Source: Oopsacas minuta
Lineage: Eukaryota > Animalia > Porifera
Direction of reading: 5' to 3'
Assembly: GCA_024704765.1 (NCBI GenBank)
Contig: JAKMXF010000354.1
Span: forward strand, 419,690-483,689
Length of the DNA stretch: 64,000 bases
Below are positions 40,046 to 46,154 of this stretch, piece after piece. Every line of letters begins with the position of its first letter. The stretch's first letter is position 1. A program made the translations under genes and the position numbers. Below the pieces are notes generated by a model. The model did no database searches and was not told where the DNA came from. It worked only from the letters and a program-made list of their open reading frames with translations.

Positions 40046-43000
40046 TTACACTTTCTGTGCAATCTGATTGAGTTTCTCTAGAATCTCTTTGTTCTGAGCC
40101 TCAACTGCTTCTAATTTTTCCTTCAGCTCCTTTACTTCGTTGGCAGCAGCCATTTTCTTTTTGATCTCCTCTACATCTGCCTGCTGGACCTTTACCTTCT
40201 TCTCAATAGAATTTTGGAGAATCTCTTGAGTACGACTGTTCACCTTTTGCTGTTGTCGTAGTTTGTTGATCACCACGTATAAGCTCTCTGAGGGCTCTTG
40301 GGTGGTGAAATCCTCGTCATCCAACCGCGAGATACCTGTAAAGAAGAGCATTAAATCAATTATTGTTTGATTTGTTTCGTTTCATATTATGAATTCGAAT
40401 CGTGCAGAATGTATTGAAGTTTGTAAGAGCTACAAACTTGAAATTTGGCTTAGTGAAATATGATAAATCTATGAATATTTATCTTATCTATGCGAAAACT
40501 AATCTCTGTAGAAACGATTATAATTTATACATTGCATACTACTTGTACTAATTTATAAACTCACCAGCATTGAAATAGTCTACCCATTCCTCATCTTCCA
40601 TTATGTAGTGTTCATCAAAGAATTTTTTCCTGAAGTCCATGAAGAGAGCTAGTAGAGATGTTGTCTGTGTTTGAATAATAAACTCAAGACGGAACTTTGC
40701 AACAGTTTTCTTTGCGTTAGCCTTTACTTCAGCATATGTATCTGAGAGCTGAGCAATGAACACGTTGAGATACACGACAATGATTAGAAACAGGAAAATT
40801 ACGTAGACGACTGCAGCTACGATATTCAAGCTATCAAATACATAGTTGAATTCGAATGCATTTCCTTCTAACAGAACACGAATTGGGTATACTAGCACGT
40901 TGTAGTATCGATCCAATCCTTCTTCTTGTAGAACTGACAGATCAAATAACGTAATGTAATACAAGGTTTCCGTTCCATTAGTCCCGTTAATCTGTCCGAT
41001 AATAATCGGTACTCGAAAAGATAGATAGAGTGTAGTAGAAAAGAAGAAAAACGTTAGGAACAGTAGCAACAGAAATTTTGGTACATCTTTCAATAGAATG
41101 AGGATGATGATCCGCATGTAAGTTCCGAATAGTTTGAACACACTGAGAAGTTTCGTAAGTCTAAAAGCATTGACTGCAAATGCAAAAGTAGCGAATACCC
41201 ATTGGAACTCAAGATAGGAAATGGTAGGATCGATAAGGATTATGATTCGAAACATGATTAAAATGAACATTAGCATCAATCCAGTTACATCTAGCCAGTT
41301 ATACCAGTCTTGGAAATAATCGATGAAGACACGAACAAGGAGATTACCGTGAAGTGCTTCTTTGACTTTTTCAAGTGTACTTTCTTTCTTTTCCACTTCT
41401 GGGGGCTCTTCTGCATCTGCCTCTTCCTTCTTCTGTTTCTCTTCATCCTTCTTTTTTCTCTGCTCCTTTAAATACTCATCGTAATCATAGTCATCATCGT
41501 CTGTTTCTGAATCGTCGTAATCGTCAGAGTATTCATCCCCCCATGAGTACCCTCCCCCCCAGGAATCATCGCTGTCATCATCACTGTCATCATCACTGTC
41601 GTCGTCATCACTCCCCTTCTTTTCACTACCTAAACCCAGTGAATCGTCGTCTGAATCACCAGCATCATCTCCTTTAGCCTTTATATCTGTTTCTGATTTA
41701 TCACTGTCGTTACTTTTGTCAGATTTATCAGATTTGTCAGATTTGTCAGAAACGTCACTTTTGTCACTTGTACCACCGATACTTTCAGAATCCGATTTAT
41801 CTACATCACCTGTTTTAGGAGGCACATCAACATCCGATTTATCTTCATCGCTACCTCCAGATTTATCAGATTTATCTGATTTATCTGATTTATCTGATTT
41901 ATCGGATTTCGTAGACTTTGTCGATTTGTCTGAATCATGAGATTTTACGCTTGACCCTCCAGGAGATTTTCTCCCTCCATCATCGTCATCATCGATTGGC
42001 TTAGGTTTAACTTCATCACCATCATATTCTCCAGGTTCCTTCTTTTCTCGAACTGTTTTGCCAGTTTTTTTGGGAGGTGGTTCTCCTCCTTTCCTCAAGT
42101 TTCGTTCTTGTTCTTCTTGAAGACGTGACTTTTTTTCTTGTTTTTTATCGCCTATCTCTTTTCGCGCATAGAATAATACTTGAACCACTTCTGCAAACTC
42201 TGTCACGAGATTACTCATCCAGAATAACACCACATAGATTTCACATATAAACCTCAATATATCCCAACCTGTAAATGCACGTACGTTATTTCTGTACAGA
42301 GTAGTAGGTCCCCTATGTTGCTGTGCAGCTTGTGCTAAGGCATACAGCATGGCTGCTAAGAAACTGATGAAAATTAATGTTTTGAACCACAACAAGAAGT
42401 TTCCATATCGTTGGAACTTCTGATTCACCAGTAGACGAGTAACACCGTGATAAGCAATCTCTTCATTGTCACATGAAGCGAATCTCTGTAGCAAATAAGG
42501 CCTTCTCCTTCCGCCTTCTTCATATTCCCATTCGTCATCAGGTGTTACGTTTGCACGGTCGATTTCTAGTACTGTAAAGTCGACTTTAACTGTAGAAAAT
42601 ATTTATAATTATGCATATGTGGAATAAACGATAACATTAATTTAAATCATTAGGATAACCATATGTAAGAGTTTAGCTAGGACTTAGGTTGCATATTTAC
42701 AATATCTTAATATATAATTGTAGTATTTGAAAGCGCTGCAGTACGATTGGCTTTATGTTCTAGACGAGATATCTATCGTAGCTCGAACTCCAGCGATTAT
42801 AGTTTTTAATAATGCTGAATTTATCTATATGTCATTAAAAACGCAACACAAGTTTGACAATAGATGCCTTCATTTTGTTAAATTTGTAAGCAATATATAA
42901 TGTTGTTATAACCTGTGTTCTTACCTTAGTCCGCAAATTATTAAGTGTTATAGCTCCTAATATGCGAAATATGTCGCTGTTTAAATACATGGCTCAACGT

Positions 43001-44372
43001 ATGCTAACACTGATTCGCAATTCTCAGGTAAGCAAGTTAAAATCATAGAACATTAAATAATTAAATAATTCAGCTTACCCCTGTTTTTGTCCAATTCTGG
43101 CTCTATCAAGCAGTCCAACATAGTCAATAGACTCTTGTAGAGTTCCTTCGTTAGTACTTTATGCCAACCCAAGTTCTTGAAGTTCTCAGCTCCAGCGTGA
43201 GCTCGTACTATTACTGATAGAGCGTCGTCCTGCTTCTTATTCCTAGCAATAGTGAATGCATCTGCTCTGCTCTTGTCCTTAGCATCTAGTGATGCTCCGC
43301 TAAGCAGTAATTCACGTGCTGCTGCTGCATTACCTGCTTTACACGCTAGCATGAGTGGTGTCTGATAGAATCGATTCCTTGCGTCCACGTTTGCTCCATT
43401 GTTAACTAGAATAGGAATGAGCGTATCTCTTCCCTCGATTGCAGCGATGAAAATAGCCGTCAAACCTCTACGGTCCTCAGAATTTACATCAGCTCCAGCA
43501 CGGATAAGATTGTAGATTAACTCTTCCGGGGCATTCTGTATGGAAACGAAAAGTGGCGTGCGTTTAGCCTTGTTAACCTCATCAACTTTAGCTCCCTTCT
43601 GTATAAGAAGACTCACACAAGTACTGTAACCGTTACGACTAGCTAAATGCAGTGCTGTATTCCCTTCACTGTCTTTCTGATTAATATTCACATTACTTTG
43701 CTTCTCCAACAATAACTTCAGAACTTCTCGACTCCCAAAAAACGCACAGAAGTGAAGATAAGTTGCATCAGGATCTTGATAAATGTGCTTGTTCTCTCTC
43801 TCTTTTGTTTTATCCTCTGGGTAGTCATCATAAATTTCATCAAAATCAACCTCCCTCTTCAATAGGATCTTAGCAATTAACACCGAGTTCTTAGTGCATG
43901 CCCTTAGCATTGCCGTATTGACATACATATCTTCATCATCTATACCTTCCCTTATCGCTCGCAATAATACCAAACAGAAAATGTCTAAACGATCGATGTT
44001 AGCAGCGAAAGTTAATGGTGTGATGAGGTCACCTTTTTCATCCCATTCATACACGTCGATTGGTGCTCCAGCCTCGAGTAACCTTTTTACGGTTTCAGCT
44101 TTTCCTTCGCTCATTGCATTTTCCAAATCGGTTCCCTTTTCATGATCAACTGGGACCTCTTCGATATCCTTCTTGAGGATATTCAAGATAAGTGTCTGGA
44201 TTGTTTCGTTCTTCTCTTTTGCCTCTTTTGCTTCTTTTTCTTTGTCTACTTCTTTTTTCCCTTCGTCCTTAGTTTCTTCAACTTCCACGTCTTTACTTGG
44301 TGCTTCATCTGATTTTATTTCTCCAAGTTCTATATCCTCCCCAATCAATTTCTCTTTTTCCTCTGTTGCCAT
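40046..44372 (-). CDS. Ankyrin-repeat TRP cation channel (TRPA/TRPV-like) with a large acidic S2-S3 insert
   Basis: Exons 44372-43079, 42589-40565, 40335-40046 join in frame. Multiple ankyrin repeats (GNTALHLASRNG, QTPLMLACKAG); pre-S1 YHGVTRLLVNQKFQRYG; S3 YFQDWYNWLD; S6 LNVFIAQLSDTY; C-terminal coiled coil. Confidence 0.9.
41691..41933 (-). repeat. Coding tandem repeats of a 9-nt unit encoding Ser-Asp-Lys
   Basis: TCAGATAAA/TCTGACAAA-type units giving SDKSDKSDKSDKSDK blocks inside the TRP exon. Confidence 0.9.
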
Positions 44373-45080
44373 TTTTCAACAGATTTGGAATATATTCGAT
44401 ATAATCAGCTTAAAATACACGAGTTTGTATACCTATCAATAATTGCGTCTATATTTGTCTATTTGAGTTTATATATACCTTGATCTGCAGTCCTATCTTA
44501 TGGAACTTTATACGGTCTCCTTTTGGACTCTGATCTAATTACCAGAGTTCAGATACGTGATTACATTGACTGTATGTATGTATTATAAAATATATATTCA
44601 CAGGAGTCTGTAATTGATATCTAGCAATATAGATTATCAACTTATACTATTATGAAAATATCAATTGTATTGTAGAAGAAATAGTCACTACGTAAAGTGT
44701 TGGTCATTGATACCCTTTTTAGAGGTATTTACTGTGTCTAAGGTTAATTGATTTGTTACATTCCTTATGACGTCCTGGAATGAGTATAAGGATATGAATC
44801 CAAAACCATTTAAATTACTTCTTGTACTAAAAAGCTAGGTTATTGTTACATCCCGAATATTGTCATTAAAAAATATTCCTGACATATTCATGCTTCTTGA
44901 TTTCATTTTATGCCAAAATCATGTTCATCTACGTCAAAATTCAGATTCGTGCCAATGGCGAAATCTATAAACTTTGTTCTTGATCTGGCAACACTGTAAT
45001 ATATCATGGCCACAGAGGTTCTCCCTAATATAATGCTTATCAAACAATCTGTACGTTTATACCGAATTAGTAGGTACACC

Positions 45081-46154
45081 ATGGGTAATTATTTCAATTC
45101 AAATACTAATACAACAAGACCTGAACCTATACAAACTAATACTCCCCCGCAAGAACCTATAAAACCTCAAGCTAGCTCGTTTAGTATGAGAGAACCTCTG
45201 CTCTTCTCTCTTCTAGCAAACTATGATCGAATTCTGCTAGCTGGTTGCGGGGGAGGGTATGACTTTATGAGTGGACTCCCACTCTATTTTGCACTAAAAG
45301 AATTAGGCAAGAAACCCTTCCTTGCTAATTTATCATTTACTACGCTAAACGATGTTAAACGTCTAAATCCGGATGACGTCATTTTGAATTGCGGATTTCG
45401 AGTTCATTATAAAACAAAGGTAGCTAGCAATAGATACTTTCCCGAGCTATTCACCTGTCAGTGGTTCCGTAAGAAGGGAGAAGATGTTGAAATATTTGCA
45501 TTTGATCACTTCCCTGCTACCAGGGATCTTATAGACTGTTACCAGTGGATTTGTAAAGAGAGAGGAATAGATGCTATAGTATTAGTAGATGGTGGGACAG
45601 ATAGTCTCACTTATGGGGATGAGTGTGGGATGGGAACTCCTGTGGAAGACCACACCAGCATGGCTGCTATAGATATGGTAGATGGGATAGGGCTTAAACT
45701 GCTCTGTTGTATTGGATTTGGAGTAGATTCATTTCATGGAATAAGCCATGGATTATTCCTACAAAATGTAGCAAGAGCAGAGAAGCAAGGACATTTCTAT
45801 GGATCATTCTCTGTATCGAGACATACTCCTGAAGCTCGTCAGTACATAGAGTGCTATGAGTATGTAGCTGCTAGAATGCAACCTTCCATTGTATGCTCTT
45901 CAATCATTAGTGGGATTAATGGAGAGTTTGGGAACCATCACTCCACAGAGAGAACTAAAAGCTCTACTCTATTCATTAATCACTTAATGTGTATTCTATG
46001 GACATTTGACTTACAAGGCGTTAACAAGAATATCCCGTACCTGGATAAAGTTAAACAATCTACCGGCGCTCTGGAAACTGATTCTATAATTACTTCATAT
46101 CGATCTAAAATTGGAGATGATAAAATACGACAGCCATTGCCATTACCAATGTGA
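45081..46154 (+). CDS. DUF1152-family protein of bacterial/archaeal type
   Basis: FSMREP, ILLAGCGGGYD, LANLSF, YFPE, DAIVLVDGGTDSL, GTPVED, IGFGVDSFHG, PSIV, TERT..LFINHLM are the DUF1152 motifs as I recall them. Start set at ATG 45081 (MGNYF), after AATTAG/TAG acceptor-like sites. Confidence 0.85.
   Translation: MGNYFNSNTNTTRPEPIQTNTPPQEPIKPQASSFSMREPLLFSLLANYDRILLAGCGGGYDFMSGLPLYFALKELGKKPFLANLSFTTLNDVKRLNPDDVILNCGFRVHYKTKVASNRYFPELFTCQWFRKKGEDVEIFAFDHFPATRDLIDCYQWICKERGIDAIVLVDGGTDSLTYGDECGMGTPVEDHTSMAAIDMVDGIGLKLLCCIGFGVDSFHGISHGLFLQNVARAEKQGHFYGSFSVSRHTPEARQYIECYEYVAARMQPSIVCSSIISGINGEFGNHHSTERTKSSTLFINHLMCILWTFDLQGVNKNIPYLDKVKQSTGALETDSIITSYRSKIGDDKIRQPLPLPM

Follow-up and report, generated by a model that had tools for sequence, protein, structure and literature searches.

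Few segments of a TRP channel are as short or as constrained as the link between transmembrane helices S2 and S3, which in TRPM, TRPC, and TRPA borders the site that binds activating Ca2+. The two halves of this site are separated by 13-34 residues in TRPM2/4/5/8, TRPC4/5, and TRPA1; in TRPV channels, to our knowledge, the S2-S3 link is short and there is no E/Q/N/D site. At its C-terminus, Drosophila TRP carries Lys-Pro and DKDKKPGD repeats. In TRPA1, the Ca2+ site consists of E788, Q791, N805, and E808 (PMC8036557), and the S2/S3 site has been described in other TRPs as well (PMC8036557; bioRxiv 10.1101/2020.10.12.336495). The DDDD patch of the yeast channel TRPY1 was once proposed to be a Ca2+ sensor but was later reported not to be essential (bioRxiv 10.1101/2020.10.12.336495). 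As charged, low-complexity cytosolic segments on a TRP core, the TRPY1 patch and the Drosophila repeats resemble the loop described here, but they belong to the C-terminal tail, not to the S1-S4 bundle, and the TRPY1 patch is far shorter.

In the channel analyzed here, the usual link of ~13 residues is replaced by a mostly disordered, strongly acidic S2-S3 loop of about 290 residues which, judging from sequence comparison, is conserved in related sponges. A search of the literature on long S2-S3 links in TRPs and on glass-sponge TRPs did not find this feature described. The window, that is, the entire 64,000-nucleotide stretch of DNA to which all coordinates refer, belongs to contig JAKMXF010000354.1 of assembly GCA_024704765.1; JAKMXF is the project of Oopsacas minuta, a glass sponge, a possibility that the first-pass annotation had raised for the host. 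Open reading frames and splice signals delineate a minus-strand gene (44372..40046) with three exons that encodes a 1202-aa channel in which a six-helix TRP core follows ankyrin repeats and precedes a C-terminal coiled coil. The deposited NCBI product, with its length taken from the contig annotation table, matches the 1202 codons of exons 1, 2, and 3 and covers the same 4327-bp span; the JAKMXF gene models were made with BRAKER and RNA-seq hints.

All features of the gene are on the minus strand. Exon 1 (43079..44372; 431 codons plus 1 base) begins with the start codon at 44372, encodes an acidic N-terminus and the ankyrin-repeat domain (Pfam Ank/Ank_2, E 1e-37), block-aligns with the orthologous loci, and ends at a phase 1 donor, G/GTAAGC, at 43078. 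Intron 1 (42590..43078; GT...TTCTACAG), the splice signals and phase of which were read from the sequence, shows no DNA alignment across species, whereas the exons do align. Exon 2 (40565..42589; Pfam Ion_trans) encompasses the pre-S1 region, S1-S6, the TRP-like helix, and the entire S2-S3 loop, and is followed by the phase 1 intron 2 (40336..40564; GTGAGT...TTCTTTACAG). Exon 3 (40046..40335; stop codon 40046-40048) encodes a charged, heptad-rich (coiled-coil-like) C-terminal tail and shows 79-81% DNA identity to the downstream 92-aa ORF of the orthologous loci. Residues are numbered along the minus-strand translation of window positions 40551-42587 (679 aa); sequence searches and folding were performed on the exon translations singly.

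The assignment of this protein to the TRP superfamily in the first-pass annotation agrees with the searches, in which the significant sequence and structure matches are TRP channels, with one weak exception. The PDB profile search retrieved TRP channels only, apart from cytochrome bc1 subunit 6 at a weak E-value of 0.0087, and every significant Foldseek match is a TRP channel. The AlphaFold2 (AF2) helices form a six-helix subunit with an S1-S4 bundle, an S5-S6 pore loop, and a post-S6 TRP helix, and exon 1 supplies N-terminal ankyrin repeats of the TRPA/TRPV/TRPN/TRPC type. The post-S6 helix reads A-K-F-R-L-E-F, without Trp, in the long-loop clade defined below, and A-W-Q-R-L-N-F in its sister clade.

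The subfamily signals are divided. Against PDB sequences, the profile E-values are 3e-8 for algal TRP1, 5e-5 for TRPM5, and 1e-4 for TRPV4; structural alignment with VIA-align favors TRPV, and sequence and profile searches and Foldseek do not separate TRPV, TRPM, TRPC, and algal TRP1. The TRPV1-TRPV6 structures are the closest structural match (Z 19-21, about 320 residues, rmsd about 4 Å) and likewise have a short ankyrin domain, but share only 14-16% sequence identity with this channel, and their profile E-value of 1e-4 is no better than that of TRPM5 or algal TRP1. Chlamydomonas TRP1 (PDB 6pw4) is the top sequence match among solved structures, across S3-S6 (E 1e-6 when a single sequence is used, 3e-8 when the profile is used), but is a distant relative that shares no ankyrin domain and lacks a comparable loop. 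Assignment to TRPA was rejected: TRPA1 is absent from the PDB profile matches at E<=0.01, and the ankyrin exon encodes only 431 aa, in contrast to the long array of 14 or more ankyrin repeats typical of TRPA. The C-terminal coiled coil and the E/Q/N/D-type residues are common to TRPA, yet not exclusive to it.

A single uninterrupted ORF (40548..42494) spans both the S2 motif NLVTEFAEVVQ (residues 126-136, 42212..42180) and the S3 motif YFQDWYNWLD (residues 424-433, 41318..41289), which places the insert in the S2-S3 link, as initially proposed. The 287 residues between the motifs include 22% D, 16% K, 14% S, and 10% E, with a net charge of -37; the span originally delimited, 41346-42164, corresponds to residues 142-414 and indeed contains all the elements listed for it, namely, a basic start, SDK arrays, a D/S run, WGGGYSWG, a Y/D tract, and a charged helical end. 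S2 (42180..42269; about residues 107-136), which ends with E130, E133, and Q136, lies inside an AF2 helix (107-166) that continues into the cytosol as a basic extension (42090..42179; residues 137-166; pLDDT about 65-76). The loop opens with the basic segment YARKEIGDKKQEKK..., and this extension has the lowest pN within the loop. The disordered core (41484..42089; residues 167-368; pLDDT 31-40, no secondary structure) comprises a basic/Pro segment, DDDDD-GGRKSPGGSS, the SDK arrays, the D/S run, the aromatic island, and the Y/D tract. The SDK/STK tandem array 1 (41862..41933; residues 219-242) and SDK tandem array 2 (41715..41750; residues 280-291) are both identified by TRF as period-9 DNA repeats (41860-41909 and 41715-41750). 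The Asp/Ser run of 17 residues (41562..41612; residues 326-342) is followed by the aromatic island WGGGYSWG (41538..41561; residues 343-350), and a motif of the W-G-x-Y type is seen again in the alignment of close orthologues. The charged pre-S3 helices (41313..41483; residues 369-425; AF2 helices 369-392, 397-414, and 416-425, pLDDT up to about 82) include five residues conserved in at least 90% of the sequences (K409, L412, N415, R419, and V420) and lead to S3, S4, S5, the pore helix, S6, and the TRP-like helix (40662..41306; residues 428-642), with invariant D427, N430, and D433 at the start of S3. With 32% D+E, 14% S, a net charge of -37, and pLDDT of 31-40, the loop is a polyanion that is calsequestrin- or phosphophoryn-like in composition.

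The predicted topology, the check suggested by the first-pass annotation, conforms to this layout: AlphaFold2 places S2 at about 107-136, S3 at 428-452, and the loop between them, in the form of the S2 extension helix, about 200 disordered residues (172-366 with pLDDT <50 and no secondary structure), and the pre-S3 helices, although with a shallow input alignment and a mean pLDDT of 61, the disorder and the helices are predictions. The helix assignment agrees with that of TRPV1 over the whole stretch between pre-S1 and the TRP helix (VIA-align Z 21, 324 residues, rmsd 4.0), and the same S2 extension helix is predicted in the model of a sister paralogue. A cytosolic location of the S2-S3 link is in keeping with the N-terminal ankyrin repeats and with NGT sequons that are conserved in the S5-pore loop.

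On either side of the loop are residues that align with the S2/S3 Ca2+ site of TRPM, TRPC, and TRPA; the first-pass annotation had pointed to a Ca2+ site in this linker in several TRP channels. Among 25 sequences, E130, N430, and D433 are invariant and E133 is conserved in at least 90%; E130 and E133 align with the E-x-x-Q positions of the short-link relatives, and in the profile-PDB alignment, N430 and D433 fall on the N and D of the WNKCD motif of TRPM5. Thus, acidic or amide side chains occupy two S2 and two S3 positions, the same residue types as in the TRPM/TRPC/TRPA1 site, but in this putative site, the two halves (E130/E133/Q136 on S2 and N430/D433 on S3) are 293 residues apart, all within exon 2. 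The sister clade has R at the position of Q136.

The distance between the S2 and S3 motifs is 10-13 residues in the relatives from Oscarella, Sycon, and jellyfish, 40-97 residues in the sister glass-sponge paralogues, and 176-293 residues in a group of 13 genes. A phylogenetic tree of the family members alone, computed without the loop columns, unites these 13 genes in one clade (SH-aLRT 100) that is nested within the mid-length clade (99) and separate from the short-link clade (99). The named members of the enlarged-link family come solely from glass sponges (Oopsacas and Vazella). The short-link relatives (Oscarella ‘TRPV1-like’ XP_065839643.1, Sycon ‘Transient receptor potential A’ A0A0A9ZGA8, and those from Sanderia malayensis) share the ankyrin repeats, the channel core, E-x-x-Q on S2, and N-x-x-D on S3, but have the short link and form their own clade. 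The sister paralogues (e.g., O. minuta ‘Ankyrin repeat domain-containing 29-like’ P0020 and P0034, and the Vazella pourtalesii transcript P0029) are about 40% identical to this channel in the core and have in common with it the ankyrin N-terminus, the C-terminal coiled coil, and invariant E130, D427, N430, and D433; their link follows the same design of an S2 extension helix, a poly-Asp loop, and a pre-S3 helix, but they are encoded in a single ORF of 860-945 aa instead of three exons and lack the SDK arrays. Within the detectable family, no insert outside the 13-gene clade is comparable, consistent with the initial impression that no other TRP carries one; in contrast, the notion of an insertion into a short link does not hold: the long loop lies in the S2-S3 link but grew from one already enlarged to 40-97 residues. 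Two other apparent long links were rejected: Sanderia protein P0071 (628) consists of two channels fused in tandem, both with short links, and the link of P0068 (135) is hydrophobic and unrelated.

Strong acidity and the SDK arrays are restricted to one orthogroup, that of the Oopsacas channel. Here the loop is a polyanion or polyampholyte with a net charge between -19 and -45 per subunit, which amounts to about -150 for the Oopsacas tetramer. Its blocks follow a preserved order, starting with a basic one, continuing with mixed Ser/Asp/Lys and then a strongly acidic block that holds the aromatic island, and ending with charged helices. The charge pattern and strong acidity are retained in nine orthologues, whereas three divergent long-loop paralogues lack strong acidity (net -11, -1, and +1). 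The number of SDK-type triplets ranges from 7 to 39 across orthologues, as expected from slippage. No part of the gene evolves faster than the loop, and selection on it appears to act mainly on length, composition, and charge pattern, and less on sequence. The natural series within one family, from about 13 through 40-97 to 176-293 residues, shows that the S2-S3 position tolerates very large disordered additions, and the matched channels with and without the loop are test material for the gating effect of a tethered polyanion beside the S1-S4 bundle.

By all these comparisons, the loop behaves as genuine coding sequence of a glass-sponge TRP channel. It is open in all 13 genes, from five assemblies, which share the three-exon layout, and the exons, including the loop, show 72-77% DNA identity between species, whereas the introns cannot be aligned. 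In the disordered part, pN (0.20-0.23) is far below the near-saturated pS (0.70-0.75), which yields an omega of about 0.07-0.11, compared to 0.03-0.05 in the TM core. The six loop indels that distinguish two 96.6%-identical copies in one assembly are all multiples of 3, and the loop serines use 27 TCN and 13 AGY codons, a mixture indicative of selection at the peptide level. All or most of 41346-42164 could in principle be spliced out as an in-frame intron or exitron, leaving a short or mid-length link, and frame-preserving exitrons are known from low-complexity coding sequence; however, we found neither a GTRAG donor nor a polypyrimidine-YAG acceptor inside the loop, the coding strand of which is merely 34.5% pyrimidine, and the segment is retained in the RNA-seq-hinted deposited model. 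Together with the interspecies alignability that true introns lack, the low omega, and the exclusively in-frame indels, this makes splicing of the loop highly unlikely. Although 9-bp tandem repeats can be assembled at the wrong size, the chance of an assembly artifact is negligible given the comparable loops in four other independent assemblies and the identical exon-2 protein in two haplotig-like contigs (98.7% identical) of one assembly, between which the proposed check for repeat-length polymorphism revealed none.

We consider it probable that this is a genuine coding loop in a rebuilt S2-S3 link that serves, most likely, as an electrostatic regulatory element. In the glass-sponge family, the link has been rebuilt: S2 is prolonged by a basic helix, a disordered acidic loop follows, and further helices connect to S3; in the 13-gene clade, the loop grew further, to 176-293 residues. 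Four such tethers would be suspended next to the cytosolic opening of the S1-S4 bundle, the place where TRPM, TRPC, and TRPA bind activating Ca2+. The loop could bind Ca2+ or other cations with low affinity, pair reversibly with the basic helices, be phosphorylated at its many Ser-acidic sites, or dock partners on the aromatic island, and any of these actions could tune gating or localization. The roles of Ca2+ buffer, phospho-switch, and condensate-former, envisaged at the outset, are conjecture. Alternatively, the loop could be a translated by-product of slippage that is tolerated in a permissive cytosolic position, has no specific gating role, and stays in frame because a frameshift would destroy S3-S6. 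The period-9 repeats, the widely varying repeat counts among orthologues, the loss of acidity in three paralogues, the single position conserved at the 90% level or above in the disordered part, rates of substitution and of indels that exceed those of the rest of the gene, and the reported dispensability of the TRPY1 acidic patch are all compatible with such growth. Nevertheless, we regard it as the less likely, if serious, possibility, considering that pN in the disordered part is three- to four-fold below the near-saturated pS, nine orthologues preserve both the aromatic island and the succession of charge blocks, none of the 13 clade members, of which a genome can have up to four paralogues, has lost the long loop, and the serine codon usage suggests peptide-level selection. 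The most ambitious version of the regulatory reading, in which the S2-S3 hairpin with its expandable polyanion would be a new built-in TRP gating module, a tethered, phosphorylation-tunable cation sink by the S1-S4 Ca2+ site that sets the Ca2+ dependence or refractoriness of a channel serving the Ca2+-based impulse in the glass-sponge syncytium, appears improbable.

Participation of this gene in the electrical arrest response, raised in the first-pass annotation, is likewise conjecture. The channel would then handle Ca2+ in the glass-sponge action potential and feeding-current arrest, with the acidic loop buffering or sensing the impulse Ca2+. The host is a glass sponge, the named members of the enlarged-link family come from glass sponges, and the genome paper, which reports many TRP hits, no Nav, and no obvious Kv channels, recalls that the impulse is blocked by Ca2+-channel blockers. 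However, this channel is one among dozens of glass-sponge TRP paralogues, and the genome paper names other Ca2+ channel candidates, so we consider such a role for this particular gene very unlikely. More generally, with Ca2+-dependent impulses but without the usual Nav/Kv toolkit, glass sponges have an expanded and structurally odd TRP repertoire that is a reasonable place to seek the channels behind these impulses.

The TRP gene is encoded on the minus strand of the window in three exons: 44372..43079, with ankyrin repeats (Pfam E 1e-37), 42589..40565, with the channel core, and 40335..40049, with a charged, coiled-coil-like tail. The exons total 1202 codons, and, as read from the sequence, both introns are bounded by GT and AG and interrupt the frame in the same phase, 1. 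An uninterrupted minus-strand ORF (40548..42494) detected by the window ORF scan spans both the S2 and S3 motifs, NLVTEFAEVVQ (residues 126-136) and YFQDWYNWLD (residues 424-433), so numbered in the 679-aa translation of 42587-40551; the segment 41346-42164, described in the first-pass annotation as a Ser-Asp-Lys-repeat insert of about 270 aa in the S2-S3 linker, corresponds to residues 142-414. GenBank already lists the protein as an uncharacterised model: the deposited annotation of JAKMXF010000354.1, a contig of assembly GCA_024704765.1, has a 1202-residue product over the identical 4327-bp span, and thus the loop is kept as coding in the deposited model. A single-exon protein encoded nearby is identical to an NCBI entry on this contig. 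The contig belongs to the JAKMXF genome project of Oopsacas minuta, with genes predicted by BRAKER/Augustus with RNA-seq hints (PMC10280926), which bears out the supposition that the host is a glass sponge. The exons were analysed separately, and searches and folding used single exons rather than the joined spliced protein.

Several lines of evidence identify the protein as a member of the TRP superfamily whose channel core folds like that of TRPV, in agreement with the original assignment to TRP. Pfam Ion_trans covers S3-S6. In a single-sequence search of the PDB, algal TRP1 (6pw4) was the sole strong match, with polycystin-2 next; the family-profile search also ranked algal TRP1 best, followed by TRPM5, TRPV4, TRPM8, TRPM2, Inactive and TRPC4, and TRPA1 was absent among its matches. 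The AlphaFold2 model (mean pLDDT 61, core 70-88) contains the expected helices S1-S6, with the loop between S2 and S3, as the earlier reading of the topology had it. All Foldseek matches at E <= 0.001 are TRP channels, and VIA-align superimposes the model on TRPV1, TRPV4 and TRPV2 with Z of 19-21 over about 320 residues (rmsd about 4 Å), from pre-S1 past the TRP helix. TRPV is the nearest core fold in VIA-align, whereas the profile search places algal TRP1 and TRPM5 ahead of TRPV4. The S5-pore loop (window 40986-41003, region of residues 529-545) carries a conserved double sequon, N-G-T-N-G-T, in which N534, T536 and N537 reach at least 90% conservation. The pattern is consistent with a glycosylated turret outside the cell and speaks for the predicted topology.

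Comparative sequence evidence argues strongly that the loop is coding. Twelve further genes from four other assemblies (ERZ25071281, ERZ25069837, ERZ25072730 and ERZ20067936), 51-83% identical, each contain an open loop of 170-275 residues in the same position. An ankyrin ORF lies upstream at all loci with examined flanks, an ORF of 82-104 aa lies downstream at most, and one locus shares a fatty-acid hydroxylase neighbour with the window. Cross-species DNA alignment is restricted to the three exons, with the introns unalignable, and exon 2, including the loop, aligns as a single block at 72-76% DNA identity. Between the TRP gene and two orthologues, pN is 0.20-0.23 against pS of 0.70-0.75 in the disordered part, hence an omega of about 0.07-0.11, compared to 0.03-0.05 for the membrane core. 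Two copies in one assembly (CDS 96.6% identical) are distinguished by seven indels; each has a length divisible by three, and six fall within the loop. The loop serine codons are mixed (27 TCN, 13 AGY), and a sequence scan of the loop region found neither a GTRAG donor nor a polypyrimidine-YAG acceptor. In ERZ25071281, the loci L012 and L013, which represent either haplotypes that have diverged or duplicates of very recent origin, share 92.6% identity across about 3.7 kb with their flanks counted, and diverge most in the loop (6.8% against 0.7-2.6% elsewhere); their contigs have 157x and 363x coverage, and that of a third copy (P0001) 501x.

Searching 1.84 billion representative proteins with a profile yielded 588 relatives at E <= 0.001. 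We determined how many residues lie between positions Q136 and N430 in the 124 proteins that matched both core halves, out of 186 (the best 150 of the 588 together with those from the other searches), a sample that consists mostly of those best 150 and does not span all TRPs. The canonical TRP S2-S3 link is 13-34 residues long. Among the relatives, those of Oscarella, Sycon and a jellyfish, Sanderia, have 10-13 residues, and their S2 bears E-x-x-Q and their S3 N-x-x-D (as in E-V-N-Q, 13 residues, N-Y-L-D); in a large mid-length group, to which named proteins of Oopsacas and Vazella belong, the figure is 40-97; and 176-293 residues occur only in the 13 genes of the long-loop clade. The contention that no TRP with such an insert is known holds for the surveyed proteins outside this clade, and we found no description of a giant S2-S3 loop in the literature. 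In a tree computed without the loop columns, the 13 genes form one branch (SH-aLRT 100) nested within the mid-length group (99), and the short-link group is separate (99). The AlphaFold2 models of the TRP gene and a sister paralogue share a design in which a basic helix prolongs S2 by about 30 residues into the cytosol and is followed by a disordered acidic stretch, about 35 residues in the paralogue versus about 200 in the TRP gene, and then by a helix leading into S3; two charged helices (residues 369-414) were gained in the long-loop clade. Together, the length series, the tree nesting and the shared predicted design show that the giant loop is the extreme of a stepwise enlargement, so that the position originally proposed stands but insertion into a short link does not.

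Two link-length outliers were dismissed as comparable loops after sequence inspection. The 135-residue link of the relative P0068 (residues 615-737) is hydrophobic instead of charged and may hold one or two extra membrane helices. The 1264-aa model P0071 (Sanderia malayensis, EukProt) comprises two whole channel cores in tandem and is probably a fused prediction of adjacent paralogues. Five giant proteins of 2127-3912 aa (P0100, P0115, P0117, P0118 and P0125) have cores inside the mid-length clade and links of 77-84 residues.

E130, D427, N430 and D433 do not vary among 25 family members, and E133 hardly does. In the profile alignment, N430 and D433 correspond to the N and D of the TRPM5 site motif WNKCD. 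E130/E133 line up with E-x-x-Q in the relatives whose link is short. The Ca2+ site of TRPA1 consists of E788, Q791, N805 and E808 (PMC8036557), and those of other TRPs are located among S2, S3 and the S2-S3 link (bioRxiv 10.1101/2020.10.12.336495). Taken together, these correspondences place the loop between the two halves of a probable cation site. In most mid-length sister paralogues the residue at Q136 is Arg (E-E-R-D-N-D in 26 sequences), and its fixed positive charge beside the presumed site might substitute for a bound ion.

The loop is a coding, conserved polyanionic stretch that is predicted to be disordered and, from the topology, cytosolic, and it sits on a helical extension of S2/S3. 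The 287 residues between the motifs (22% D, 16% K, 14% S, 10% E; net charge -37) include every element listed in the first-pass annotation, from the basic segment to the charged helix, and both SDK arrays are visible in the DNA as period-9 repeats. Four such tethers adjoining the S1-S4 bundle would act as an electrostatic regulator, and the candidate modes are cation binding, pairing with basic helices, phosphorylation on the 14 S/T-x-x-D/E sites counted in the loop sequence, and partner docking. The gene is tied to the arrest response of glass sponges, for which it had been put forward, by nothing beyond host biology.

The main rival explanation treats the loop as tolerated slippage, selected for its reading frame alone. 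The acidic patch of yeast TRPY1, at first put forward as a Ca2+ sensor and subsequently reported not to be essential (bioRxiv 10.1101/2020.10.12.336495), counsels caution in this respect. In the family alignment, a single column of the disordered part is at least 90% conserved, and SDK-type triplets vary from 7 to 39 among orthologues, with the maximum in Oopsacas. The loops of the TRP gene and nine close orthologues carry a net charge of -19 to -45, and an aromatic island of the W-G-x-Y type recurs in most of them. When the loop is cut into fifths, the first is slightly basic, the second neutral, the third mildly acidic, the fourth strongly acidic (-0.39 to -0.52) and the last near neutral, an order shared by the TRP gene and eight of these nine orthologues. 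One genome has three divergent paralogues in which the loop is still long but its acidity is not retained (net -11, -1 and +1). With charge order kept in orthologues, acidity lost in these paralogues and triplet numbers variable, loop length and composition look to be under selection within the orthogroup, and the SDK arrays themselves look like recent slippage.

The gene order around the TRP gene varies. In Oopsacas, the TRP gene is separated by a DUF1152 gene (window 45006-46154) from the genes for a TFIIIC subunit and a ROCO kinase. The DUF1152 gene is absent from the syntenic position in ERZ25072730 (locus L004, 5972-6688), where the TFIIIC-subunit gene directly follows the TRP gene, in a relative orientation opposite to that in Oopsacas.
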